The position numbers and the translations under genes were made by a program. Shown here in pieces: positions 1-56,492 of a stretch of DNA of 64,000 nucleotides (the first letter of the stretch is position 1; every line of letters begins with the position of its first letter). Under the pieces are notes generated by a model that saw only the letters and a list, made by a program, of their open reading frames with translations, had not been told where the DNA came from and did no database searches. The stretch lies in assembly GCA_964035545.1 (NCBI GenBank), contig OZ037773.1, forward strand, positions 3,873,751 to 3,937,750, written 5' to 3'. The stretch is from Bugula neritina. Lineage: Eukaryota > Animalia > Bryozoa.

Positions 1-61
1 TAATAAATAACAATGTTTCTCGTATACCTATTTATAATTAAATTGCTAACTCGTAAAGATA

Positions 62-96
<35 letters not shown>

Positions 97-1818
97 ACTT
101 TTCATACTGCTGAAGTATGCTATCATTATAAGCAATCATTAGCATTTTGTGTGGTAAAATGTGATGTTTATGTTCGATGTCAATGCTAATGTTTTTTTGC
201 TCTTCATGGCACAGTATAGTGCTACCACTTTGCTGCTATAATACTGTATTACATATAACAGTGTAAAACCAGAATTTTAGATACTGATAGCAAAACTTGC
301 ACCTTTTGTGACAATGATACTATTTTAATGTCATTTGAATACAATTTACTACTCTGATAACTCTTAGTTTTAGGTTTAAATTATAATTACATTCCTAAAC
401 TTTAATTACAAATGTTACATTCTCTTGTGTCATAAAAATTTGATTCAATTTAAAATAATTATATGTTTGATCATGGGGATATAAAACAAACAATAAACAA
501 TACGAATCACAATTTATATTTTCAATAAACTACTTCGAGCTCTTACGTTGATATTCAAGTTGTAGAATTTAAAGGTAACTGTAACAATAAAGACACTGGG
601 AAAAGCCAGTGTTCTGAATTTGAAATGTCACTAAAAAATTATGTTCTTGGAAAAGTTTCAATCCGAAGTTAAATGATTAGGACTGTATCAATTTCTCTAC
701 TATTACCGTTCAGCTGCCAATAACAGAGCTACTTTAAAGTAAATAAACAATTCATTTGAACATTTGAACTGTTGACTCACAATGGCTACTGTTGTCCAAC
801 TAATTCTATGATCTTCCAGGAAACTCCCGGCAATGTTTGTTATCTGAGCCTGTAACTGATTTTCTGAGAGCCTGCAAGCCTCTCTAGTAAATTGATTGAG
901 AAATGAGAAATCTTCATTCTTTAGCTGTCTAAGCACTGAATAAAAGCATTTAATAGTTATTTTAAATAAATTCGAACAACAATTTCTCACAAATAAAATT
1001 TAACCACTTTTAGCAATAACTTTTAATTTTAATTTTTTAATTTTAATTTTTACTCCATCAACTTTTCATTGCTAAAAAGTTGATAGATTGTTTAAAATAT
1101 TGATTTCAATCACTAAAATGCTTAAAACTGAGTAAAGCTATAAAGAACAATTCTCTTTTAAAAACAAAATTGAAGATAGATAATTCTTTGTGCAGTTGAC
1201 TCGGAAAAAACCTATTATTTTTCCTCGTCACAACAAAAACATTCTGAAAAAGTAATGATATTATTTACCATTGCAAAAATGTAATAGCTTTTAATTTTTT
1301 TCTTGCCATAAATTATTAACGGACATATAACGGAGGTTGCACTTGCCTATTCTATCCATTGCTATAATAACTGGAATATGTGTTTTATTGAGGAGCTCAT
1401 CAACATCTATTCCCAGTAAATCTGCCAACTCTTCCTTCATTTGCAAATACTGTGATTTGGTATAAAATTGTCTTTCAGCACTATGATAAAATTACACACA
1501 TTTATACCATATATAAACAATATATATACGATATACAAACAATATACAAACAAAATATAAACAATATAATATATACAATATATAAACAATATATATACAA
1601 TATATAAACAATATATAAGCAATATATAAACAATATATAAGCATTATATAAGCACTATATATACGATGTATAAACAATATATATATAATATATATATTAT
1701 ATATTATATATGATGAATAGCATGAATAGTATAGCTAAAGGTATCTCAGTTTAGATATAATATATACATACCCATATGCAACATAACTTCTGAAGATATC
1801 ACTTGATGTTGGAATCAT
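1..1818 (-). CDS. Divergent Bcl-2-fold-like protein, paralogue A (3' end runs off the window)
   Basis: Manually spliced exons are 1818-1772 (47 nt), 1480-1347 (134 nt, GC-AG donor gcaagt), 935-781 (155 nt) and a probable exon starting at 27 that runs off the window. Protein: MIPTSSDIFRSYVAYG/AERQFYTKSQYLQMKEELADLLGIDVDELLNKTHIPVIIAMDRIV/LRQLKNEDFSFLNQFTREACRLSENQLQAQITNIAGSFLEDHRISWTTVAI/(VYEKHCYLL...). FLEDHRISWTTVAI resembles BH1 (FxDGxxNWGRIVA). Exon sizes and phases are identical to the gene at 2685-7425. Confidence 0.8.
1500..1710. repeat. AT-rich minisatellite (aaacaatatatat-like) in intron 1 of paralogue A
   Basis: Degenerate tandem units are visible; they explain the spurious Y/I/L/C ORFs at 1437-1677. 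Confidence 0.8.
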
Positions 1819-2684
1819 GTTTCTTATGTTGCCTCACAATTGATGCTTTACTGAAAAAACTTTTGAACTAAATCCTTTTTAGCAAATGCAAAAAATTGAT
1901 TTGTCACTTTTTTTAAAACCCTTCAAATTGTTGAATTACAACGTGAAAAATATCTGTTCAAGCAATTTAAAAAGCATATATAAAATGAATTTTAAATGAA
2001 AACTGACGCTTCATGGATCATCCAGACAAAACTACCTCATTTCTTTATAAACATTTGTTATTAATAGAATTTCTGAAACAGAGAACAGTTATCAGAGAAA
2101 AGAAAGCTGAGAAAAGCTACAAGCTTATATTACATAACAGCTGGTACACATGGCCAATAATTTTATATATACTCAAAATAATGCAGGTTTTTATTATGTT
2201 ATTTCGTTAGTAATAGTTTTTCTGCATTATAATTTTATGAACCAAGTCTTGACAATTTAGCTCAGGTTTGAAGTTGCATGTTAGGTCATAGAGGTGGGCG
2301 CAGTCTACAACAGAGCTAAAAATACTTGGCAGTAATGAGAATTTCAACTACAATGCTTACAGTAAATATTTAAAAAAGCTAAACAACTTGGTAAAAGCAT
2401 AGCTATTTCACTCTGGTTATAATCATCAAAAAGCTAGTATTTTCTTTAATGTACATTTTTATACTTTAAACGATAACGAGCACACTGGTTTTAGTAATTT
2501 TGATATAACTGCAACTAAAGTTACTTATTCAAAATACTAAACTGAAATTATAAGAGTTAGTTTCCTTTTAAAAGTCATAGTCATATTAAAGCGATAATAT
2601 TTTATACAAATTGATCGAGTTTTACAAAAAGCCAATCAGCAAAGAATCTGACGTAGATCACATCTGTTTTATCAATCGACTAAG
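1819..2684. promoter_or_regulatory. Putative shared bidirectional promoter of the two Bcl-2-like genes
   Basis: 866 bp between divergent ATGs; GC-box-like gggcgc near 2296 and a CCAAT box (agccaatcag) near 2630. Transcription starts were not located. Confidence 0.5.
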
Positions 2685-5600
2685 ATGATTCCAACAACAA
2701 CTGACATACTCATATGTTACATGGCTTTCGGGTATGTAGTCATGTGCTATATTGTTTGTTAGACTGAATAGAAGTATGACATATTTATATATGGACATTG
2801 TACATCTTTATATATCTATATGCATGCACTACAAAAGTAAGTGCTTTTAGATATTTTCAGTATAGCACTTAAGCCATGTCTATATAACATGGATTATAAA
2901 ATTTAGTCATGGTTTAGGGGTTAAGGCATTTGCCTAGTAAGCATGAAGTTATGGGTTCAACCCCCCCTCCCCTCCCCCCTCCCCCCTCCCCGACCAAGGT
3001 CATTGGTGATGTTAGGAAGAGCATCCAGTCATAATTGCTCCTATGCCTCATTTAAATATAAGTTCTTAGCCTGATTCAACAAAAACCCTTTTCTATCAAG
3101 GTTTTTTGAAAGCAGGCTAAGGACTTATTCCAATGTGGCACAGGAGATACTTTTTCTAACATCGCTACTGGCCTTTGCCGAGTTAGAACCCACAACTCCG
3201 TGTTTACTAAACCAAAACCCAAACCCCTGCTCAAGTTTTTGTACTACATTCTACGATTTGCTCTCCTTATTCTAATAATGAGCTCTACTCATGATTAATG
3301 GTGAACTTTGAACTTGTAAAGATTTTTTTTTTGAATTATACAAATCTTTATTAAGGTTATCTTAATGCTGGCATTGCATTAGCAGAATATGGTTTATATT
3401 TACAGCTAAACTGAAGCAGAAAATAGAAAACTGAACTTTGCCCTTTTAACTATCCAATAGGGTTTAACAGCCCTAAATATAGTGCTCTCTCTATATCTCA
3501 CTATGACAGCTCTCAACAAATTCCATAGGTCACAACAAGCGATTGGACCCAAATTTTATGGCTTATATTATATATGTGTGTATTATCAGAATAAAATGAC
3601 TAGAATTTAACCTTTTTCTGGTATTCTACCATGAACCATAACATAGCCAGATAAGGAGGGAGCACTGTGTAGTTAGTCAATAATTGAGTCTGATATCTAT
3701 GCTAACTATAGTCATGATTATACAAAACTAAGGTAAATAATAATTATATTGTTCTTCAATCATGTGACAATAGATAGAAATCATAGTAGAAGCCTTGGAG
3801 TTTTTATATGGTCTAGCTGCAGTCCTGTGTTGTCCCTTAGTGTAAAGTTAGACCACTTGCTTACAAGCCAGAGGTCACGGTTTTGAATCCCAGTATGGGT
3901 AATTTTTTTCTACTATTCTAGAACTTTAGGAATTAAATTGCTTTAAATTTATATAACTATTATATTGCTATGATAGAATTTTCAACTTTTATATTAAAGT
4001 TATAGTGCTTGGATTTTCGAATAAGACATATTGGAAATATATTATAATGTAGCTATATAATTCATATATCTTTTATTCGTAAGAGTTATCTCTCCATATT
4101 ATTCGTAAGAGTATCTCTCCATGTTATATTGTTATAGAGCCTCCCTAGGCGATGCGTACAAGGCAGCTTATTCTGCCAAAAAACAGCACCTTGCGAAGGC
4201 TCTCAACAGAGACGTTAACTCTCTGATCAACCCATCCTATCAGCCAATCATAGACGCAATGAATGCTATTCGTAGGTTCTTTAATTTAACCTTCAAATGT
4301 TCAAATGACAGTTTTAGAAATCTTTGTAATTGTTTTCAACTGTATTAGTTTAGCTCTTTCACTCTCTCAATTGGATGTTATTGCACTATAAAGTTCCACT
4401 ACTTATTTGTAAGTAAAAAATGATAAAATGTTGTATGTATTCTGTAAAAAGAACTTTTCAATTTTATTTCATTTAAATTGATCTTGATATTTTATTAGAA
4501 TGTCAACAATCTAATAGTTGTAGCTTGAAAACTTGTAAAATACTACCTTCAACCAATTTTCTAGCAATAATTTAAGTCACAAATAACATGTTACAAACTA
4601 GGAGTATGGTGCAGCCATCACGTTAATGTTAAACCCAAAACTCTTACTGAAACAAAGTTCTATATCTGTGTGTTTGTGTTTGTGTGTCCGACTGTGTTGT
4701 AAGAGTGTTTGTGTTGTATATGTGTGCTGTATGTGTTTTTCTGTTATATCTAGGTTGTGCGCTTGTCTATGTTGTAAGTTTGTTTGCGTGTTATGCGTTG
4801 TGCACATGTGTAGCACATTTGTGAATCATTATCTCATACTTCCAGCTCCTGTCGACAGAATTACATATTCATCACGACAGCATCATATGATCATCACATT
4901 TAAAGTTTTATAGTCGGCAAAATTGCCACAAACTCAGAATAAAATGTATATTATACTACTTTTGCTGGTTCATTCTAACGAACCACTTGATATTACTATA
5001 ATATACTACTTTCTCAGCCATATTTTCATATTTGCCTATGGTTTATTTGCATACAATTCTATCAACAGGTAATAGGCAACAAATGTTACCAGACCAAGCA
5101 TTCTTAAATAGGTATGTCGAGCACGTGGTAAAGCTGAGTAAAACCCAAATAGAAGACACTCTCGATGCTGTTTTAGTTCCAGCGATGAGTACATCCCCTT
5201 TCAGTTGGAGCAAAATGACCGTGGTGAGTGATAACCAAAATAGATTACAGCTGTGCGAACTCTATTGAAGATTTCGTCTTCCATCATAATTTTTCTGACT
5301 TTGAAAAATTTAAAGCCTATAAACTGATTGAGGTTATAATATTTTTGTAAATTGTTGATGCAAAACTTGAATTTATAACGCATGAGTATACTTTCAATTC
5401 ATCTTGCATGTCTGCTGCTTTATATTACAAGTTTTCTGTTAGTAATATATAAGAAGTAGTTGATGAGTCATTATCAAGTTCCTTGATTGTAGACTCATCA
5501 TGAATAACGAAAAAAACATTTATCGTTACAAAATTATTTATGTTTACAATACAATGGCTGAAAAACAAATATATGATGATGAGATGCTGATTGATTGATC

Positions 5601-7425
5601 AAAGTCTGTTGAATACAACAGTTTACAACCCTGCATATACACCTATGTGCAGGCACTCTTTTGCAAATCTTTTTATATGTAACTTTTTTAAAACAAAGTT
5701 CACTGAGGTATTCAGCGAACAAGAGTTTTCGCTAGTAAAACTAAATGACAGGAGTTGAAACTTGAAGTAAAAATACCACAGCTAATAGGATGAGTGATAG
5801 CAATAAGTCTAGTGTTGAGTTTACCCAGTGGTGCAGGTGGTGTAATGGTTAACACACTTGCTTGCAAGCCAGAGGGCTCGGGTTCAATTCCCAGTGGGGG
5901 CAATTATTTTACAAGCTATTTCGGCCTTTAGTAAAATGTAGTACTCTGAGGAGTTGAGTGGCCAGGAGAGCCTGATGACTGAAGGAGTAGTAGATAGGCC
6001 AGTGGAGTTGAGAGAACTGGGTGAGATGTAGTGTTGAGTCCCGTGGTGTAATGGTTAGCACACTTGCTTGCGAGCTAGAGGACTCTGGGTTTGATTCCCA
6101 GTGGGGGCAATTATTTTACAATAAATGCACCAGTAACTAACATTGGTTGGTCTAAGACTCAAAATCTATAAACACTTTTGACAGTATTATTTACAATGAA
6201 TGAAATTGTTAAAAGGATTTTGAAATAATATTGTTGTGAACTTCTGTTTAAAACTTCTAAGAAGTCACACATAGTTAGTAAATTATATCTTTTAGTTGGG
6301 TGGGTTTGCTTGTCCATGAAATGCTTTGCATTGCAGCAACTTTTAAAAAAAATTTTTACTCCATAATCAGTTGAACAAGATTTTCAACGTACTAAAGGTG
6401 TTTATTTTTGTCATTAAAACAAGAATATGCAATGCATAAGCAGGGCAGCATCATTGTTTGAATTTTTATGTAATCCTCCACTACACCAAATACCACGTGA
6501 CCCAGATCTTCAAAGCACAACAAATAGCTTAATAATTTTCTAAGCAAAACGAAATTCCTGAGTTACCAAAAACCTTTTCATCAGGGGTTCTCACAGAGAT
6601 GGTGACTATAAACCTTTGTGAGTATTTTTATGTGATGATGCACATAATAGGCTATTTGTTGTAGATAATGCATGTTCTCTCATGGATTGGTTGTTTGTTG
6701 CTGCGAGAAACGTCTGATATGAGTAAAATCGGGACAGTGGTAACCTGGTGGACTGTATTCTCCAGATACTTCAAGGATAAAGCAACTGGTCTCTGTATTG
6801 ATGAGTGGGTCCTTCAAAACAACTGTTGGGTATGTTTTCAGATCATTTGTTTTATTTTCAGTTTAAAAATAATTATAGTGTCAAGGTTAGCTAGTTGGAA
6901 GTAAAATGAACAAAGACGTCATTGTAATAAGAAATGTGAAGAGCTTCTTGATTGGATGAATTGAAATACTACGAGTATTTAGAAGTAATTAAAAGTATTT
7001 GGAATTTTGGATAGATTGTCTCAAGCACCCTACAAGGATATTCATAATTTTCATAGTTTCAAGCAATAGTTTTTTGTATTCCAAATTTAGTTTTATTTGC
7101 ACAATGTAACAGGAGACAAATGTAAGAAAAATGCATGTGATTAATTTATAAAGTTAAAATTATACCACAAAAATTGATATTATTTTGTACATAGCTGGTA
7201 TTACACTGCAAACAGTTTGTGGTTTTGTCATTGTGAACAGTTGGTATGTGTATTTAAATGTATGAATATATATATGTATCCAAATTATTGCAGTCAGGAA
7301 TAATGATTCAAAGTGAGAGGCAACAAGCATACCTACCAATGAAGTACATAAGCTTAGACACCTTAGCCTCTTACAAGGTACCAGAGAAGTATGTGCCCTT
7401 CCAAAGCATTCCTGGTGATCATTAA
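2685..7425 (+). CDS. Divergent Bcl-2-fold-like protein, paralogue B (210 aa, 5 exons, no C-terminal TM helix)
   Basis: GT-AG exons 2685-2731, 4138-4271, 5069-5223, 6665-6829 and 7294-7425 join in frame (633 nt). Motifs: BH4-like TTDILICYMAFG, BH3-position IIDAMNAIRNR, BH1-like PFSWSKMTV/IMHVLSWIG, BH2-like IDEWVLQNNCW/SGI. A phase-0 intron follows the BH2 Trp, as in Bcl-2 family genes. Confidence 0.8.
2905..3105 (+). mobile_element. tRNA-derived SINE, family A (degenerate copy)
   Basis: A-box-like tggtttagggg and B-box-like gggttcaacc; the body matches the reverse complement of 63051-63234. Confidence 0.75.
3099..3232 (-). mobile_element. tRNA-derived SINE, family A (internally deleted, tail-to-tail with the previous copy)
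   Basis: Segments gctaaggacttatt, cacaggag, ctaacatc, tggcctttg, gaaccca, gtttacta and aacccct align with 63070-63232 in the same orientation. Confidence 0.65.
3832..3909 (+). mobile_element. Short tRNA-like SINE or pseudo-tRNA, family B
   Basis: Shares cacttgct..caagccagagg and a B-box-like tgaatcccagt with the copies at 5824 and 6038; ends in a T-run. Confidence 0.55.
5824..5913 (+). mobile_element. Short tRNA-like SINE or pseudo-tRNA, family B
   Basis: A box tggtgtaatgg, B box ggttcaattcc, 3' gggggcaattatttt; the acceptor and anticodon stems are imperfect. Confidence 0.7.
6038..6120 (+). mobile_element. Short tRNA-like SINE or pseudo-tRNA, family B
   Basis: Head gtcccgtggtgtaatggttagcac resembles the tRNA-Gln D-arm; T-arm ctggg-tttgatt-cccag; same 3' tail as the 5824 copy. 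Confidence 0.7.
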
Positions 7426-7826
7426 TTTACCCCACATATTATAGTCAAAACTTATTTTTATATGATATCTTTAACATGTTGGTTATTGCTATAGAAAATA
7501 AAGGCAAGGTTTATACTCAAGTATCCAGGTTGATTATTATAGTGCGTCTTTGCTGTCTTTTTCACAGCTATATTCTCATACAAGAACAATTAAAATAGAT
7601 TACGTTTGGATGAACAAAAGAAATTCATTTTTGACTTCGATTTCCCAATATTATATTTATCTGCCTATTTAACCATATAATTACAAATGATATAAAATAC
7701 ATGGAAACATTTAATAGACAGCAGTACACAAAGAAGTTCATGTAAACACAGAAGCTGCAGTAATATCGCCACAACACTACTTAACTTGACTTGAGATAGA
7801 AAAAAAAAAAAAAATCAATTTTGAGA

Positions 7827-10800
7827 TTATTTTCTACGCCTTTTATTGGCTGGTTTTCGACTATTCCTCTTGGAGCTAGAAAGCCATCTTTCTTGCTTAT
7901 CCTCCCACGCCAACTGCCTGGCACCTGAATTAGCAGCACATAAACAAGTGTGAATAAACTACACGGTGAATCATTTCAATAGAATGCTGCCATCATTAAC
8001 TTCTCAAGCAGTCGCCACAAGCTACATCAACAATATATATGAGCTGCACAACATTGCACTGCATTCACCGAGTAAACAAGAAATGCTGAATTGACTGATG
8101 AAACAGGAAATGCTGTATCTACTGATAAAACAGGAAATGCTGTATCTACTGATAAAACAGGAAATGCTGTATCTACTGATGAAACAGGAAATGCTGTATC
8201 TACTGATAAAACAGGAAATGCTGTATCTACTGATGAAACAGGAAATGCTGTATCTACTGATAAAACAGGAAATGCATGGCACACAGCCGACAAACAGGAA
8301 ACACATACTTGCTTTGCCTCTGTTCACCACGGCGTTGGAGGAAGTCGAGTCTAGCAAATCTGCTGACTCCTCATCTAGCAGGTCAGCAAATTCCTCTGCG
8401 GCAGCAAAAACAGAGCCCGAGTTTTTACTCTTCTTAGTTAGCCTTAGAGAAATGATAAAACACCAAGGTTAATGAAAAGATGGTAATATAAATGATTATT
8501 GGCGGGCAGTTAAAATGGCTAACTATCCAAATTGCTCTAATATTCTCCAACTAACCAGCAGTTGAAACAAAGAGCATTGATTCATGGCATACTAGATAAT
8601 GCTGTCAACAAACCATATATTTCTTTCTTGCAAAACTAGCAACAGTAGTGTGAATGGGTGAATGTTACAAAAGTAATAAAATTCCATGTCAACTGTAATG
8701 TTAAAAGCGACCAGTTTTTCAAGCTTTACCGATAACTTTTAATAATAGAAGAAGTAAACTTCCATGTTCAAAAGCATGTGATATTTAAGCAATAACAACA
8801 TGTAAGACAAAAAATACGAACGTGTTTTTAGACGACTTGAATATGTCTTTAGTCTTTTTAGCTTTAGATGTTGCCGCGAAGTCACCAAACTCATCGTCTG
8901 AAATATGCACACATTGTTAGAGTGACACAATACTAACTTAGCAGCTGCTCGGCCTTCCAGTTCATTCAGCAGAGATTAATAAACTGATTTACAAGATTTA
9001 GGTTTCAAACCAACAAACACCGACAACTAAAAGCATTAGAAATTATCATGATTCAGTTCAAGTCTGTCATTTGTGCAACGGCTTTAACACAAGATAGTTT
9101 TGTTTAGAATGTAAGATACAGGCTGATATTGGAATAAGCAGAGCAGAAGACTTACCAGAGAACTCAACATTCTCTTCATCAAAGTCGGGGGCTGGTGCAA
9201 AGACCCCCTCCATAGCCTCGTCGTCCATGTCTAGAGGCAGATCACTGCTATCATCACTCTCCGCATCGTCAGACATCTGACCAATAAAGTAGTAGCTTAA
9301 TAAGTACAACATATCGAGACAGCAACTACAAACAAATAAATATTTTACGAAAAAAGATTACCTGCACATCATCTTCTGGGTCTATTTCATCATTCAGATC
9401 GTCGTCATCAAGGCCAAAGTCTGAAGGCTTTAGCCCTAAATCTTCAGCCTCGTCATCTTCTAAATAATTGAAGAACTAAGGTTATAAAATGTGCCGAAAG
9501 AAACAGGGAATAAATGATCAGTTATAGAGGGAGTGGCTAGTGAGTTATAGAGGGAGTGGCCAGTGAGTAATAGAGGGAGTGGCTAGTGAGTTGAAGAGGG
9601 TGTGGCTAGTGAGTTATAGAGGAAGTAGCAAACAGGAAATGGCTGACCGACACTCACCATCACTATCTCCACTCTCAGGGTCACTGCCATCCTCCTCACC
9701 ATCAGATTTCTTTCCTTTACCAACGTCTGCCAAGGTTTTCTTTTTGAAGTCACTAGAATGCAAATAGGACTGAGTCATTTGACACAAATACAAAACCAAC
9801 TGCAAAATGATCTCCATAATCAAAAGTTTAGAGTTTAAATTATCATAAAAAAAGACCGGATGACTAAAGAGCTGTTTGATAAACACACGTAAATCACCAT
9901 GAGAACAAGTACCTCGCAAAGTCCGCACCAAACAGGTCTTCCTTCAAATCTGCATAGAGAGACTTCTCGTACTTGTGGAGATAGGAATCAAAGTCATCAT
10001 CGTCCACCTCACTTCCGTCAGAATCAGCAGCTTTCTCCTTCACTCCCAGGCGACTGCCCAACTTGTGTTTACTGCCGTCAGTTAGTTTGTGGAAATATCT
10101 GACACAAAGTAAAGAAATAGTAAAGAGACAGCGTGTGATAACTCCAACAGAAGAGTGGCAATGCATGACAAACATCACTGATAACCACTTCATAACTACA
10201 TTATACTGAAAAAATATCTGGCCATCTTCTAAAAATCATTCAAGTAGTGTAATACTACATGAATTAATGCTCTATTCACAGACACCCTGTGATACTGTCT
10301 GATACCAACTAATGCCTTCTAATGGACCCCATAGCATACTGACACCTTACGCTACTTTCTGACACCATGTTCTACTGTATGGCACTTTGTGATGCTGTCT
10401 GACACCACATATAAACACTCCAAACGTACCTGTGAAAAAATCTTTGGTCCACTGGCACATTTTCCAACTCCATGTTGTAAAACTCTTCAGAATTAACCGC
10501 AACACCTGTTGATTTCTTAAGTAACTCTCTGTTTTTATGCGAGCTGAGCGCATGCTTTGCTTTGTCTAAAACACAGCAGAATATAATGGAAAGACAACTC
10601 TACAACCTCAAAGCATTTAAAACTAAACTTAAGATATCAATTTATATACATAACTAGGCTGAGAAAAAAAGTTAACAAATTTATGGATGTCAAAATTATG
10701 ATACAAATAAATGAAACCTTTACAACAGTTCTCATTAAACAAACAGGAAAAGCGTGTATGTATACTTGTACACAACATGGCCCATACACATCCAACACTC

Positions 10801-13800: not shown

Positions 13801-16800
13801 AGAGAAATGCATATGCACTCTACCAGATATTGTATTCTTAAACATACTATCAATGAATGAGAAAAGTAGAAACCACAGATATATAAGAAGGTCATCATGT
13901 AAATATCTTAGCGTCATCAACACATATCAGCCAAATGCTAAGCGCCATGTTGAAGACACTTTTTTCAGAATGATATTATCAAAGGTTTTAGCATGAAACA
14001 GAAATGCTGGGCAAAAGACAAAGTTGGAGAACAGAAATAAGTTTACTTTACAATCAAACACTAAAGAGAACAAACATTACCTTTAGCAAATGGGAATGCC
14101 CGGACCACACCCACTAACAATGCGCTCATCATTTTAGAGTCAACTTCCTGTGACTTAACAGTCGCCTGCAACACGTCAAAAACATACGATACGGCCATTT
14201 GAACGACAAAAGGAAAACTGGTCTATTTGTATAGTATAGTGCACAAGTAAAAAGTCTACATGCATGTGTTCAAGTGCGTTGAACTCGCAAACATTCCAAG
14301 AATGAACCACTTTAAGCAGGATGATTGTCTAAAATTAACATTACTCTGTGTATGTGTAAGTGTGTAGGTTTGTGTGACACTTACCTTAAAGAAACTGAAG
14401 TAAATGGTGATGAGTTTAACAGCGAGCTCTTGGTCGTTTTCACTAAGTATCATCTGATTGAGGAAGCATATGGAATAGTACCTGTTAGAGATCAATAAGC
14501 AATAATAATTAATTCTCATCTCTATAATGGCTATTAGGACATTATAGAGATGAACACAATCCGCCGACCTATATAAAAAACTAAATACAGCTTGCTTGAG
14601 ATGAGTGCAGATAGCAACAGACTTCTGCAGAAAATAAAAGGTAACAGTAGATAGCTAGCAATAGTACTAAGAAAGTAGAGTAACTACAAATTATACAATG
14701 TAATTTTAAATGTAATCTGCAAGTGATGAAAGCTTGTTTGTGATTATATAAGTGATGAGGTAATGATAGAGGCTGTATAACAGACATAGTAGCACTCACT
14801 GAGCCTTTTTTGAGATGTTGGGTCGGTACAGGATGTTCATCACCTCAGACACCACAACCATTTTCATATTTGGGTGTTTCTTGACTGCAACACAATACAG
14901 CACAGATCTTGTGAAAAGGTGTTTGCTGTTACTGGCTGAATATGAACGTAGATGTTGCATTATGTTTCACAGCAAGCCATACGCCACTACTTAATAGAAA
15001 ATACTCTAACCTCCGTGAAACTCTACATCACAAACTCTTTAAAAAGATATTGTGATTAAAAGAACACAGCTCTGTGCACGTGCATGCTGTGTGTTTTACA
15101 AAGATTGGCAAACTAAATGTATGATGGATACTCTGGAGAATGCCAAATGAAAGAAGGTGAAATGCTTACCCAAGCAGCTGAGCAGGTGGGCAACATTAGC
15201 AGCTATCTTCCTTTCCGGGTCTCCCAGCTTATTCACCAGACCGGGAAGCAGCTTCTGCTCCAGCTCTGGTTTAGATGAGAGTAGATCCAGTACAACCTGG
15301 TGAGGGACAGAGTGAACAGATAGTAAAATACATACAGGGAAACACAACTCTCGACTACAATACTATGCCGGAAAGGAAAAGGCCCCGCCTACCTTGAGAG
15401 CAGCCTGCTTGTGGGCGGAGACACTATCAAAGGTAGCGGCAAGCACCGCCTCCACAAACAGCGAGTATACAGCTTTCAGACGAGCCTCAAAGTGCCAAAG
15501 AGCGAGAATTCTGTCTTGAGTGTCTTTGTTGCCGCTCGAGTGATGCTGAAGGGTTTCCAGGGGCATCTGTGGAGCAACAGGAAATAGGTCGATAAACAGG
15601 TCGCATATAACGGCTTAAATATCAAGTTAGTGAAAATTAGTTGCATGAAACAATGTAAGATTCTGCCATAACTGAGTTTTGTGTGGGATCATAGCGCTGC
15701 ATTCTCAAATTATTTCTCCGTGAAAATAAAAAACAGGTTGTCATTCACCTGATGGAAAGCACGGAGTTTTCTCTTGTTGGGTAACAGATCCAGAAACACG
15801 TCCTTTAGGGGACCTGAAAGACAAACTAACTAGTAATATACATTGTATTGTATTGCAGTAGCTGTGTTGATATAATAACAAACTAACCAGTAATATACAC
15901 TGCATTGTATTGCAGTAGCTGTGTTGATGTTATAACGAAGCAGCATTACAAAGTATTTCCTGAACTAAACAACCAATGACATGCGTGTTGAAAAGAGAAC
16001 AGCCAATGCAGCAGAAGAAAGTGAAGTAGACAGCCGGTAACATGGCAGAGAACAAAGTTACTGACAGGATATATACACAAATACTGACCAATAGCGGTCA
16101 TGCTCTCTCTGCGGCCCTTCTTCTTCACCATACTGACTAGAGACTCTAGACTGGAGAGGTTGTGCACCACGTCTTCCTGCACGAGGGTGGTCAGGGCGGC
16201 TGCCCTGTCCGCTAAAGTACCACTTGACACCATCCTCTTCCGCCACTCAACGTCTGACTTACTGGCCCCAGTGATGTCTACAAGTAATAAGAGTTTAGGT
16301 CATAGACATAGACCTAAAGTAGATATAGAGTACAGGTTTAACAGAAGTATAGAGAGTAAGTATTACAAACAAGTGAACCTATTTCTACTTTTACGATACT
16401 ATCAAATGCTCATACATTCTACAATACAGATACAACATACACCCAAAGTGATAACACGACTCCAAACGCACTTTCTAATAGCACTACTATTAAAGGTTTT
16501 GTATACATTGTTGTGACTTACTGGAACTGTATATGCTGATGTCATCATTAAAAACTTGCTGAGCAAACCTTTCAATCTCTGATATTTGAGGGTGGGGTAG
16601 GCCAGAGTGCACCGGGCTGTCTTTACTCTCCAACTTCAAGAACACAGACTAGTATGAATTGAATTACATTATCACCATATTAGACATATTCAACTTTAAC
16701 AAAGATTGAATAACTACAAATATTGTGTATAGCTTTCACAATGATTTATACACAAGTTGAGCTTGTAAGTAGGGTTTGCAGTGTAAAATGCTACCACTGT

Positions 16801-19383
16801 AAGCCTATGCAGCGCATTGCTACCAGTGTATGTGACATATTGTCAACACTGTGTGTGGTATACTGTCAACACTGTGTGTGGCATATTGTCAACACTATGT
16901 GTGGTATATTGTCAACACTGTATGTGGTATATTGTCAACACTGCATGTGGTATATTGTCAACACTGTGTGTGGTATACTGTTAACACTGTGTGTGGTATA
17001 TTGTCAACACTGTGTGTGGCATATTGTCAACACTGTGTGTGGTATACTGTCAACGTTGTATGTGGTATATTGTCAACACTGTATAGCAGTATATTGTCAA
17101 CACTGTGTGTGGCATACTGTTAACACTGTGTGTAGTATATTGTCAACACTGTGTGTGGTATATTATCAACACTGTGTGTGGTATACTGTCAATATTGTGC
17201 GTGGTATACTGTCAACACTGCATGTGGTATACTGTCAACACTGCATGTGGTATATTGTCAACACTGTGTGTGGTATATTGTCAACACTGTGTGTGGCATA
17301 TTGTCAACACAGTATGTGGCATATTGTCAACACTGTATTGTGCACACCTGATCAAGCCTACATCCTACAGAGACTATAAACATACCTGAGCAAGCCATTT
17401 GCCGGGTTTAATGAGAGGATAACTTCTCTTTGAGTAACCAGTCTCAATATAAGCCAATAAGTTAGTTAAGTCAGCGACTCCACTGATTGGATCTCCAGGG
17501 TCAGCGCTGACTGGCTCTGGTGGTGTGGTGCTGGTCACCTCGTCATCCTGCACTGAAAACACCCATTTAGTCTTGAGAAACATAAAGTATACAAGACAGT
17601 TCATAGATGAAGTTATCAAACTGGTAGATGTACACACATTTAAATTTATTTTTGCTTTTCTTTTCCTTCTTTGAAGTAGTGGGTGCTTCGGCGGGGACAA
17701 ACTCTGACGTCAGGAGCTTTTTAGACTTTTCTTTCTTCTGCCTATTGAAGCAAAGAAGAGCCGTGAACAGCTGATTTGTCTAGACAATGAATTGTGCATG
17801 TTAAAATGATATTTTATAAAAAAAATCAAGTGACTTGTTCAGTACAATTGAGTATAACAACCGCATCTGCGACCAACAAATATATGAGCACAAGATCCCA
17901 TCTAGTGGGCAAAATTCTACACACAGAGGCCACATGTATATCTATATGGGTACATATCACTATGGGACCCAATAAACCTAGAAATACTATATACTACATA
18001 TATACTATATAAAAGGTATCCTTATGCGGTTGTGATAAGCAAATCATTAGTTCAACATATAATTGATATACTAGCTTTTAGTTTCTATATGAGTCATATA
18101 ATATATTACTCATACTGTTGATTATAAGATATTTATAGTCAGTCCAAAACGCTTACATTTTCATTACCTGTTTCAATACAAGAGCCAAACAATTACTAAA
18201 AATCTTACAAAAATGAAGGTGGAAATGCTTACGCAAAATCTGGTCTTTCTTTCCGAATACCCAAATTGGATATGAACTGAAGAATATCGTCCCTTTTGAT
18301 TGGCTCAGTATCATCATCCCCAAACTCAAGGTCTTCGACATCAGAGCCAATATCAACATCCAGTAAATCTAAATCTTTCTGAAAATTCCAAGACATACCC
18401 GAGATTACTTTATATAGATCAGGTCATAGAAAATTAAAAAAACTAATTGCCATTATCATTACATTACAATTATCGGAATTATTGATGAAAAAAATATGTT
18501 CAACATTAAAAATAAAACAGTGACAAGAAACAAATCTGCAAACTCAAATAAAAATTCAAGTTACAATAAGACAAATTCTAGGGGTATTCAAAATAGTAAC
18601 AAATCAATATGACAAAATGTTAAAAACCTAAAGGCTAGAGCAGACTAAAGGATTTTAAGGGAGATTAACCAGTCAAGCTAAAAATCAAATGTCAACACAT
18701 TTCTAAACTGAACAAAAATTATGCAATAATTTTCATTGAAAACACTGAGCACTAACTCTAAACCTACTACTCACTACTACAGGTACTATAAATAATAAAT
18801 GTCAGAATGTAGAAAGAACTCAGGAAAACTAAATCAAATTGTGAGCTAAACAAAACTCCAAGCAACATAAGTAAAAAGAAAATGCATAACTTAAACTAAT
18901 AAAGAATTATAATCTAAAGTAGAGATTGGAGGAAATTATAAAACTTTAACTAAAATGTAAGTGATATCTAATGCTGCATTGACAATATCAATAGAATATA
19001 AATATTGACTGCTTCCAATTTGCCTCAATTGAAAAATATCAGTTTTTATTTTAATATTACTAATATAATACCTTGCTTCCTCCCAACTGTAAAACGTGTT
19101 GAACAATTGCACCACGACTATCACCATGGACATCTTCATCTTGATCATCATGATGATCTTCAACTTGATCTCCATCTTCACCTTTCTCTTGTTCTACAGA
19201 ACTCTGCTGATTCTTGTTTGGCCGCAGCTTTTTACTGAGGTTTTCAGTCCCAGAGTAAGTTAATTTCGCACCAACACTGTTGATGTTACTGGTCAACCTT
19301 GTACTTTTAGTTTTGCTTTTAGAATTGTAATTTTTCTTCTTGGTTTTATTTTTAGCAGGTGCCGTAGCCGTATCCATCTTCAT
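7827..19383 (-). CDS. CEBPZ: CCAAT/enhancer-binding protein zeta (MAK21/NOC1 ribosome biogenesis factor), multi-exon
   Basis: Exons encode GTLADRAAALTTLVQED, KPELEQKLLPGLVNKLGDP, HPNMKMVVVSEV, YYSICFLNQMIL, RNPLYCHAD..HYHPSVAVFA..YKGDPMADFSLQKFLDRFVFRNPK, an acidic C-terminal region, GSVFAAAEEFADLL and terminal ARQLAWEDKQERW..KRRRK*. ATG at 19383, stop at 7829-7827. Not every internal boundary was resolved. Confidence 0.93.
8076..8276. repeat. 27-bp minisatellite in the last CEBPZ intron
   Basis: Unit aggaaatgctgtatctactgat(a/g)aaac, about 7 copies. Confidence 0.95.
9521..9620. repeat. 23-bp minisatellite
   Basis: Unit gttatagagggagtggctagtga, about 4 copies. Confidence 0.9.
11676..12344. 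repeat. ~19-bp minisatellite containing the splice-donor motif, interrupted by a MITE
   Basis: Unit actagagt(g/a)actaatactc reads gtgagtattagt... on the sense (minus) strand and starts at the real donor at 12344. Confidence 0.85.
11772..12080. mobile_element. hAT-type MITE
   Basis: Imperfect TIRs cagggcatccagcct / aggtgggacacccctg; 8-bp TSD tactaggg/tactagag (1 mismatch); internal tgtggccc repeats. Confidence 0.75.
12990..13110. repeat. ~22-bp minisatellite
   Basis: Unit agactatattatatacaatacg, about 5 degenerate copies. Confidence 0.8.
13441..13630. repeat. 20-bp minisatellite
   Basis: Unit cacagtgctgacacgtgcca, about 9 copies, next to a CEBPZ splice donor. Confidence 0.9.
16836..17336. 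repeat. 23-bp minisatellite
   Basis: Unit attgtcaacactgtgtgtggtat, about 21 copies; source of the Cys/Val-rich spurious ORFs. Confidence 0.95.
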
Positions 19384-53325: not shown

Positions 53326-54108
53326 AAGCTTTATTTATTCTTATACTAGAGTATGTATGATTTCAGAAAGCTAACTCTAATACCTAATAATGTGCTTTTA
53401 AAAGTTAAAGTTTGCTTCCCATATTTTTTATATATTTTTAGTAATTGTTAATTGATTACCAATGATTACTAATTACTAGCGAAACAGTAGTGACTGCTTA
53501 ATTACAATTAGTTAGTAAATTTGTATTAATAGTAATTTAGTAACTAGTAACTATAAGCTAGAAGTAATTATTAAAACAGGTTTTTTATTTTAATATGATT
53601 TTTTTGCCAATATTGGTTACTGATTACTATATACAACTATTTGATAACAGTAACTCATTCACTTAGACTTATTCAAGCTCTGGACCTTTAAATTTTGCTG
53701 CAATTTGCAAATTTTCAAATGCAAGTTACAGGAATTCAAGCTCCTGTGTATCATTTATGTAGTAACAATACGCAACCACTTTCTATATTTATCACCTTCT
53801 AATACTTCGAATTTTCTCTGCTATGATGATGTAATAGTTCAATAAAAAAAGTTTAAAATGCTGACCTCAGTTTACAGGAAGTGTTTTGCAGAAGCTATGG
53901 CAGCTTAGTTCCGCCAGCCACTTCATATTGTTGGATCACAGTGTATTTAGTTATCTAGACATAAATTAAAGTGTTTAATTATTGTGTTTATTCATCTGTA
54001 TTTATCATATAATGCTGTTGAGCAGTATAATGAACCATGATATTATTTCTTGCATTAAAAATATAATATTAAGTGTGCACATATATAATATAAGCACAAA
54101 AGGGTCTA

Positions 54109-55110
<1,002 letters not shown>

Positions 55111-56492
55111 ATTGTCTTACAATTAGAAAAAAATACTTACATCATTATGTTATACCAGTTAATTTACATGATGCTGCATGTAAATTCTATAATATATGCA
55201 CAGCTCATGTTTATACATAAAAAAATTTTACAGTAGAATATTACAGATTTCAAAGTTACGTTGAAATGGTATATTTTATTATTTATAGAACTAATTACCT
55301 TATAAGCACATGTTGGCAAACTAAATGCATTTTTTGGTATATATCTTTTGGAAAATAATAGTTTATGGTTAAAATAATTTTACATACGACCCATAATTTC
55401 TCAAATTTTAAAGCAAATTTGACAGAGCTCTGATAAAAATATATTATGCAGTTCTCTTTTTGAGTCAAAATTTTGAAGCATAAAGTTACGTGCTAGGCAA
55501 CATGTTAGCTTTTAAAGGAAACAACTTCTAAATTAATACATCTAAGGTAAAAACAATGCAAATATCATAAACAATCGAACAATCATTGCATTCATAATAG
55601 TAATATAATATACGAAAATGTGTGTAGAGGTTCATTGTAACAATAGGACACTAAATTTCCTTATATGGTTTGCATATTTTCCCAACAATCAAACTGTTAC
55701 TATACTTAATAGATTAGGCAAATTAAACAAAATGGTGGTATTGAGTGAGATTTATTATTTCAGCGTTCCTTTATTGCAAACTACTGTATGTGCGTATTTT
55801 TATTACCCTTTTTCATTTTTTGCTTGATCAATAGGATTGGCGCAGCAGGGAGCTTTGTAGACTCGTAAGTTGAGATGAGTATTTTGTAAAATAATTGAAT
55901 TAAATAGGTGTTATTGACCATGTAATAATATTTATTTAAAAAGCAACTTGATTTTAGTAGACAGATACAGCATTGAGTTGGAATATTGTAATAGTTGTTG
56001 GTGACACTGGGAAGGGCACTGCTGAGGAAATAGCTTTTATAAGTTTTGAAGCTTATTAGTTCAAGTTATTATCTTCTTAGTATTTCACAATTTATTACAT
56101 TTACCGTTTATAGTATTACTAATAGTGAGAGGAAAATCTTTCAATAAAACTCATTTTTAAGTTAAAAGTTTTCATTATGATGAGAAACCTTCATAATTGA
56201 AAGTGGCAAAGCCTCAGACTATGCTAGCAACATAAACTGAGGGCTTTTAATGTAGCTCAGTAATAGATGGGACCATACGTTCTTCCTGATGTCACTAACA
56301 ACTAGGGCATGAACCCCATGATGTGTGTCAGCATAGAGCTTATCTAATAGCCTACAGATGCTTGCTTGCTTGCTTCTTTATTGCTGTATGTTTAATTTCA
56401 CTGTAAAAAGTTACCAAGCAATCATGTAACTTTTGCAACTTCAGCCAAGCATATATGAGCCAAGTTTAATTAAAATTTAATAAATATTTTAG

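Follow-up and report, generated by a model that had tools for sequence, protein, structure and literature searches.

Introduction

The canonical multi-BH (Bcl-2 homology) proteins of the Bcl-2 family (PF00452), represented here by Bugula neritina BCL2 (KAF6031707.1) and by structures from Trichoplax, Hydra and Schistosoma (6yld, 6wgz, 7jmt), typically, if not universally, carry a C-terminal transmembrane anchor. In Bcl-2 and Bcl-xL, the BH3 groove is lined by the Gly and Arg of BH1, and this Arg forms a pair with the conserved Asp of BH3. A looser assemblage comprises the vertebrate proteins BCL2L12, BCL2L15/Bfk and Bid and the poxviral proteins N1, A52, B14, K7 and M11L, which share with the genes reported below a Bcl-2-type bundle, eroded BH motifs and the lack of an anchor. 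Several members of this anchorless or BH-degenerate group work by means other than the canonical BH3 groove. Here we report on three genes of the bryozoan Bugula neritina, termed A, B and C, which we read from a window of 64,000 nucleotides (nt) on contig OZ037773.1 of assembly GCA_964035545.1 (G000:C9:3873751-3937750 in our numbering, to which window positions refer) and from the 20 kb upstream of it.

Bryozoan colonies consist of zooids that go through cycles of degeneration and regeneration, and to our knowledge the cell-death machinery of these colonial animals is essentially unstudied; a literature search brought up no publication on the Bcl-2 family in bryozoans. An original prediction, made from the sequence of this window, had described A and B as an old, head-to-head and lineage-specific pair of Bcl-2-fold genes. 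Judged from sequence, A and B are real and intact genes and probably very divergent Bcl-2 relatives; the family to which they belong, however, is a local trio rather than a pair.

Results

Gene B lies on the plus strand (2685-7425) and encodes 210 amino acids (aa), whereas gene A, on the minus strand with its ATG at 1818, encodes 207 aa over five exons. The third member, paralogue C (L003), is found on the minus strand at C9:3869509-3865907 (window -7843 to -4241), encodes 205 aa and starts with MIPN. In full-length blastp comparisons, A and B are 33% identical over 209 aa (expect value, E, 2e-37), B and C 30% (E 2e-26) and A and C 26% (E 5e-15), A and B being each other's closest paralogue. 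On these alignments the similarity among the three is far above chance, and when exon 4 and the tail exon were used as profiles, A, B and C were the only matches in the 216-Mb genome. A search with the spliced core of B retrieved a single protein, the orthologue P0001 (210 aa, 90% identical), which is encoded on a 1316-nt Logan contig (L017) of SRR4020085.

The relationship of the trio to Bcl-2 emerged from profile-profile comparison. When A, B, C and P0001 were aligned by hhalign to six canonical Bugula Bcl-2 sequences, the match (Prob 90%, P 1.6e-6, score 46.3) spanned 139 collinear columns and extended from the BH4-like N-terminal helix through the BH3-like region and BH1 to BH2. The best score among 39 controls (one reversed query and 38 column- or block-shuffled ones) was 19.0, and the real score stands about 12 standard deviations (SD) above them. 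An earlier template of two sequences had given P 1.5e-5, and two canonical subgroups taken singly gave P 2e-4 and 6e-5. MAFFT alone yields a register identical to that of hhalign, and the most hydrophobic segment of A, B and C falls at the expected place of the Bcl-2 central helix 5.

Two intron positions point in the same direction. A phase-0 intron directly follows the BH2 Trp in A, B and C alike, and gt stands directly after this Trp in 10 of the 12 PF00452 hits of the genome that we inspected (nine reach the end of the profile). A second phase-0 intron lies exactly five residues past the BH1 Trp in the Pfam-positive loci L009 and L011, where INWGKLVL is followed by gtaagt and LTWGRLAI by gtgagt; it is found at the same position in the trio, after ISWTTVAI in A, FSWSKMTV in B and MMWSVFSG in C, the last of these being followed by gtgagt. 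In an alignment of the trio with canonical genes (hereafter A5), the exon fragments of both start and stop in the same columns. Together, the profile-profile match and the two intron positions indicate that A, B and C are homologous to Bcl-2 by descent, as the original prediction had proposed.

One structure prediction was consistent with this. With A5, in which rows of canonical Bugula Bcl-2 had been added, AlphaFold2 (AF2) gave a model whose core, residues 70-160, reached a predicted local distance difference test score (pLDDT) of 70-88, with a predicted template modelling score (pTM) of 0.50. The top 50 Foldseek matches of this model were almost without exception Bcl-2 family structures (prob up to 0.98, E 0.2 or worse), including schistosome BCL-2, MCL-1, Trichoplax trBcl-2L2, BAX, BOK, BAK and Hydra HyBcl-2-4. 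VIA-align placed it at Z 8.4 to Bcl-xL over 101-105 residues, amid generic helical proteins of like Z. The A5-based model thus fits the Bcl-2 fold, as a prediction that is neither independent nor decisive.

Several results nevertheless weigh against a trio of Bcl-2 descent. PF00452 found no match at E<=10, whether the query was a single exon, the spliced core of B or P0001, and none of the 29 exon hits of a six-frame PF00452 scan of the genome lies within the cluster. Searches of PDB sequences, by phmmer and by hmmsearch with the exon-4 profile, returned no Bcl-2 chain. The AF2 model of P0001 alone was all-helical and unconfident (pLDDT 45, pTM 0.37), and its Foldseek list was noise; the A5-based model, for its part, is not independent of the Bcl-2 hypothesis, its Foldseek E is 0.2 or worse, and generic helical bundles also attain a VIA Z of about 8. 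In addition, transcript support is confined to B, with none for A or C.

The failure of every sequence-to-profile search, along with the uninformative AF2 model obtained without added rows, could mean that the trio is a lineage-specific helical family unrelated to Bcl-2, its motifs and introns being alike by coincidence. Such a coincidence would have to account at once for a profile-profile score this far above all 39 controls, for two introns that coincide in position and phase in the aligned register, and for a most hydrophobic segment that sits at the place of helix 5; we regard it as very improbable. Single-exon Pfam matches to Emaravirus_P4, DUF4466 and DNA_pol_P_Exo (21.7 bits against a cut-off of 27) were rejected as sub-threshold noise. 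A feature search of the ESM Atlas was uninformative. Against 1.84 billion representatives, phmmer with P0001 found P0001 itself and a 69-aa fragment and no other relative, in keeping with the lineage restriction claimed at the outset.

The trio departs from the canonical proteins in several ways. The collinear match from the BH4-like region to BH2 is accompanied by retention of the BH1 Trp, of both BH2 Trp, of the hydrophobic central helix and of the phase-0 intron after the BH2 Trp, and exon 5 opens with the same [AS]G[LIF] as in Bugula BCL2. Yet the three proteins fall below Pfam detection. Within BH1, canonically NWGR, only the Trp is kept (SWSK in B, SWTT in A, MWSV in C), Gly-Arg being replaced by SK, TT and SV, respectively. 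In BH2, canonically W-x(3,4)-GGW, both Trp are invariant and Gly-Gly is replaced by NC in B (WVLQNNCW), DA in A (WISAKDAW) and NF in C (WVHNHNFW), and 7-9 residues are inserted ahead of BH2. The BH1 and BH2 motifs of the original prediction, including the gt after WVLQNNCW and the SGI that follows, were all recovered, and its remodelled groove agrees with the loss of Gly-Arg in all three genes. Given the role of this Gly-Arg in Bcl-2 and Bcl-xL, it may therefore be that canonical BH3 clamping has been lost or changed in the trio.

The C-terminal anchor is absent from all three proteins: the highest hydropathy over 19 residues in the tail is 0.25-0.61, compared with 2.06 in Bugula BCL2. Instead, a hydrophilic last exon ends in the motif [DK]Y[VM]PF[QL]x[IL]xGD, common to A, B, C and P0001. 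From the tail and the altered BH1 we infer that the trio proteins are soluble and altered in ligand binding; any role in cell death is likewise conjectural, whereas the gene models and their paralogy, the splicing of B and purifying selection on it, the homology to Bcl-2 and the lack of an anchor are established here. For the anchorless vertebrate and poxviral proteins named above, a sequence relationship to the trio is undetectable, and none of them has the YVPF..GD tail, which only the Bugula trio carries.

The closest counterparts are found in the same genome. An expanded Bugula subfamily, to which L009 and L011 on C3 and numerous exon hits on C8 belong, has both introns at positions and phases identical to those of the trio and, likewise, a single exon of about 47-57 codons for the stretch between helix 5 and the BH2 Trp. 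Unlike A, B and C, its members keep NWG[KR] and GGW and score above or close to the Pfam cut-off; in L009, the C-terminal exon is hydrophobic, which is not so in the trio.

All exons of the trio could be assembled. Gene B has five exons of 47, 134, 155, 165 and 132 nt and its introns are all GT-AG. Exon 1 (2685-2731; MIPTTTDILICYMAF), in which the BH4-like helix would start, is preceded by a 5' untranslated region (UTR) of at least 200 nt (2485-2684); exon 2 occupies 4138-4271. Exon 3 (5069-5223) ends in FSWSKMTV before gtgagt, that is, with the phase-0 intron five residues on from the BH1-like Trp. Exon 4 (6665-6829), the exon aligned with canonical Bcl-2 exons in A5, would encode helices 5-7 and ends in the BH2-like WVLQNNCW and its phase-0 intron. 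The coding part of exon 5 (7294-7425, stop codon at 7423-7425), placed by L017 and by the tail alignment, opens with SGI, encodes the hydrophilic tail with KYVPFQSIPGD and is followed by a 3' UTR of about 500 nt that reaches at least 7924 in the L017 alignment.

Gene A has exons of 47, 134, 155, 162 and 126 nt and is truncated by the window edge. Its exons, assembled from sequence, lie on the minus strand at 1772-1818 (exon 1; MIPTSSDIFRSYVAY), 1347-1480 (exon 2) and 781-935 (exon 3, ending in ISWTTVAI before gtgagt); exons 4 (C9:3871618-3871457) and 5 (C9:3870889-3870764) are outside the window, 2.1-3.0 kb upstream of it. Exon 2 is followed by a GC-AG intron with the donor GCAAGT. Paralogue C, 4.2-7.8 kb upstream of the window and tail-to-head behind A, has exons of 47, 134, 149, 171 and 117 nt, with good splice sites and the five-exon plan and phases of A and B; its tail motif reads DYVPFLDIMGD.

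Exon reassembly reproduced every figure given for the head-to-head arrangement: A and B are transcribed divergently with 866 bases between their ATGs, both proteins start with MIPT, exons 1-3 have the same lengths (47, 134 and 155 nt) and phases, and over these exons 36 of 112 residues are identical without gaps. The original description of an intact head-to-head pair thus stands for A and B, and its scope has to be widened to include C.

Splicing and selection could be assessed for B. L017 aligns with the window in five blocks (2485-2731, 4137-4274, 5069-5223, 6664-6829 and 7293-7924), the ends of which match the exon borders of B within an overhang of 1-3 nt. Its positions 1-248 cover the 5' UTR and exon 1 at 85% identity and end at the border of exon 1, positions 248-385 correspond to 4137-4274, the block of exon 3 is exact and that of exon 4 is 97% identical at the nt level. 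A close relative therefore splices out all four introns of B in the way modelled, which bears out the proposed junctions for B; evidence of this kind is available for B only. A genomic fragment of the relative (P0008) contains exon 2 with intron sequence on its flanks. Between B and its orthologue, the ratio of nonsynonymous to synonymous substitution rates (dN/dS), which had been suggested as a check, is 0.30 (dS 0.185, dN 0.055), exon 4 being the most conserved; gene B is under purifying selection.

No orthologue of A was found by a word-based search of the protein collection that contains P0001, and two scans of metagenome contigs with exons 3 and 4 of A gave no match. Since the transcript and selection evidence is limited to B, since A requires a rare GC donor and since no orthologue of it was found in the searched protein and metagenome collections, it could be argued that B is the sole working gene and that A, perhaps with C, is unexpressed or decaying, its open frames persisting by chance. 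Against this, GCAAGT is the standard GC-donor consensus, and at 26-33% mutual identity all three genes keep five exons, matching phases and good splice sites, without a stop or frameshift. The conserved tryptophans and the tail motif, which decay would not preserve, are kept as well. We therefore consider decay of A and C to be quite unlikely, and treat the three genes as an intact trio below.

The original prediction had further suggested that A and B form a co-regulated module. Given the 5' UTR of B, the upstream DNA shared by the two genes, from the start codon of A to the first known transcribed base of B (1819-2484), measures no more than 666 bp, so a bidirectional promoter is possible, and this segment may be considered a candidate for one. 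A and B are, moreover, mutually closest paralogues, and Bcl-2 members often act through paralogue heterodimers, so that the two products might work as a heterodimer or as a sensor and its antagonist. However, C stands tail-to-head behind A as a third family member, which leaves no special pairing of A with B; the failure to find an A orthologue in the only transcript-type assembly that holds the B orthologue speaks weakly against equal co-expression; and neither protein has the BH1 Gly-Arg on which canonical heterodimers rely. Such a module seems unlikely to us.

The introns of B contain several copies, in both orientations, of a tRNA-like element, apparently a short interspersed element (2880-3000, 3830-3900, 5820-5900 and 6040-6115), and there is a C-rich run at about 2965-2990. 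Intron 1 of A (about 1490-1720) includes an AT-rich, minisatellite-like stretch, with a simple AT-rich part at 1584-1619, that matches some 200 places genome-wide. On the minus strand at about 7685-7924 (L017 1077-1316), the spliced contig passes from the 3' UTR of B into the 3' end of an open reading frame (ORF) on the opposite strand; a convergent neighbouring gene therefore seems to overlap or abut the 3' UTR of B.

Genome-wide, the 29 exon hits of the six-frame PF00452 scan represent at least about 22 loci, some of them in tandem (C3:19.927-19.930 Mb, C8:9.87-9.94 Mb and C8:10.79 Mb), and the Bugula Bcl-2 family thus appears to be very large for an invertebrate. Many of the weaker hits begin at profile position 52-56, which fits the exon plan of the expanded subfamily, a plan confirmed solely at L009 and L011. 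One canonical Bcl-2 ORF, L005, shows 100% identity to the representative of a cluster that also includes the protein KAF6031707.1, annotated as 'BCL2 [Bugula neritina]', which marks the genome as that of B. neritina or of a species very near it.

The trio adjoins a further gene, D (L004; about C9:3861350-3863400, minus strand). It has a BH1-like exon ending in IFWGVIVE before gt and a BH2-like exon, DDWIFTMPLYGW, ending in LYGW before gt, with the two intron positions as in the trio, and then an exon of about 415 codons that is rich in Pro and Ala and contains two Cys/His modules. Gene D is weakly similar to canonical Bcl-2 (P 5e-4). A four-gene tandem family of A, B, C and D was rejected, as D has no specific similarity to the other three.

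Elsewhere in the window, GC content is raised to 0.39-0.40 at 8-18 kb, and positions 54001-56000 are extreme in the composition profile (GC skew +0.63, AT skew -0.33). An ORF on the plus strand at 16723-17379 has a Pfam match of 24.9 bits to ATR-like HEAT repeats, which stays below the cut-off of 27.

Discussion

Taken as a whole, the evidence makes it probable that A, B and C encode Bcl-2-derived, anchorless proteins with an altered BH1, which may act as modulators or adaptors rather than as canonical BH3 clamps. The trio would have arisen by local duplication, with one step inverted, from a Bugula Bcl-2 subfamily that already had the two phase-0 introns, at five residues past the BH1 Trp and after the BH2 Trp. 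Its members still show the pattern of helices, a hydrophobic central helix and the key Trp residues, whereas a hydrophilic tail with a conserved motif has taken the place of the membrane anchor and the BH1 Gly-Arg has been lost. The products may then be soluble cytosolic Bcl-2-fold proteins that would be unable to clamp a BH3 helix via the Arg-Asp salt bridge, and they are more likely to be modulators or adaptors of cell death or of related signalling. As to the tail motif, our guess is that it may dock to a partner or else fold back into the groove of the same protein.

A bolder view is that the trio constitutes a new soluble branch of the Bcl-2 superfamily, in which the anchor has been swapped for a short linear docking motif, [DE][DK]YVPF-x-x-[IL]-x-GD. 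The Bcl-2 fold would then serve this colonial animal away from the mitochondrion, for instance in selective autophagy, in the control of caspases or in death linked to allorecognition. The motif invites this view in two respects: its F-x-x-[IL] core, preceded by acidic residues, is reminiscent of an LC3-interacting region, and its [IL]-x-G-D of an initiator-caspase site. We hold it to be speculative and rather unlikely as a whole.

In summary, the cluster adds to the Bcl-2 family members that are invisible to standard annotation. It also illustrates how far the fold may drift: the anchor and the BH1 Gly-Arg have been lost and a new conserved tail has been gained, in proteins of which at least B is under purifying selection. 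The trio offers a concrete test case for the question of whether expanded invertebrate Bcl-2 families still use the BH3 groove.

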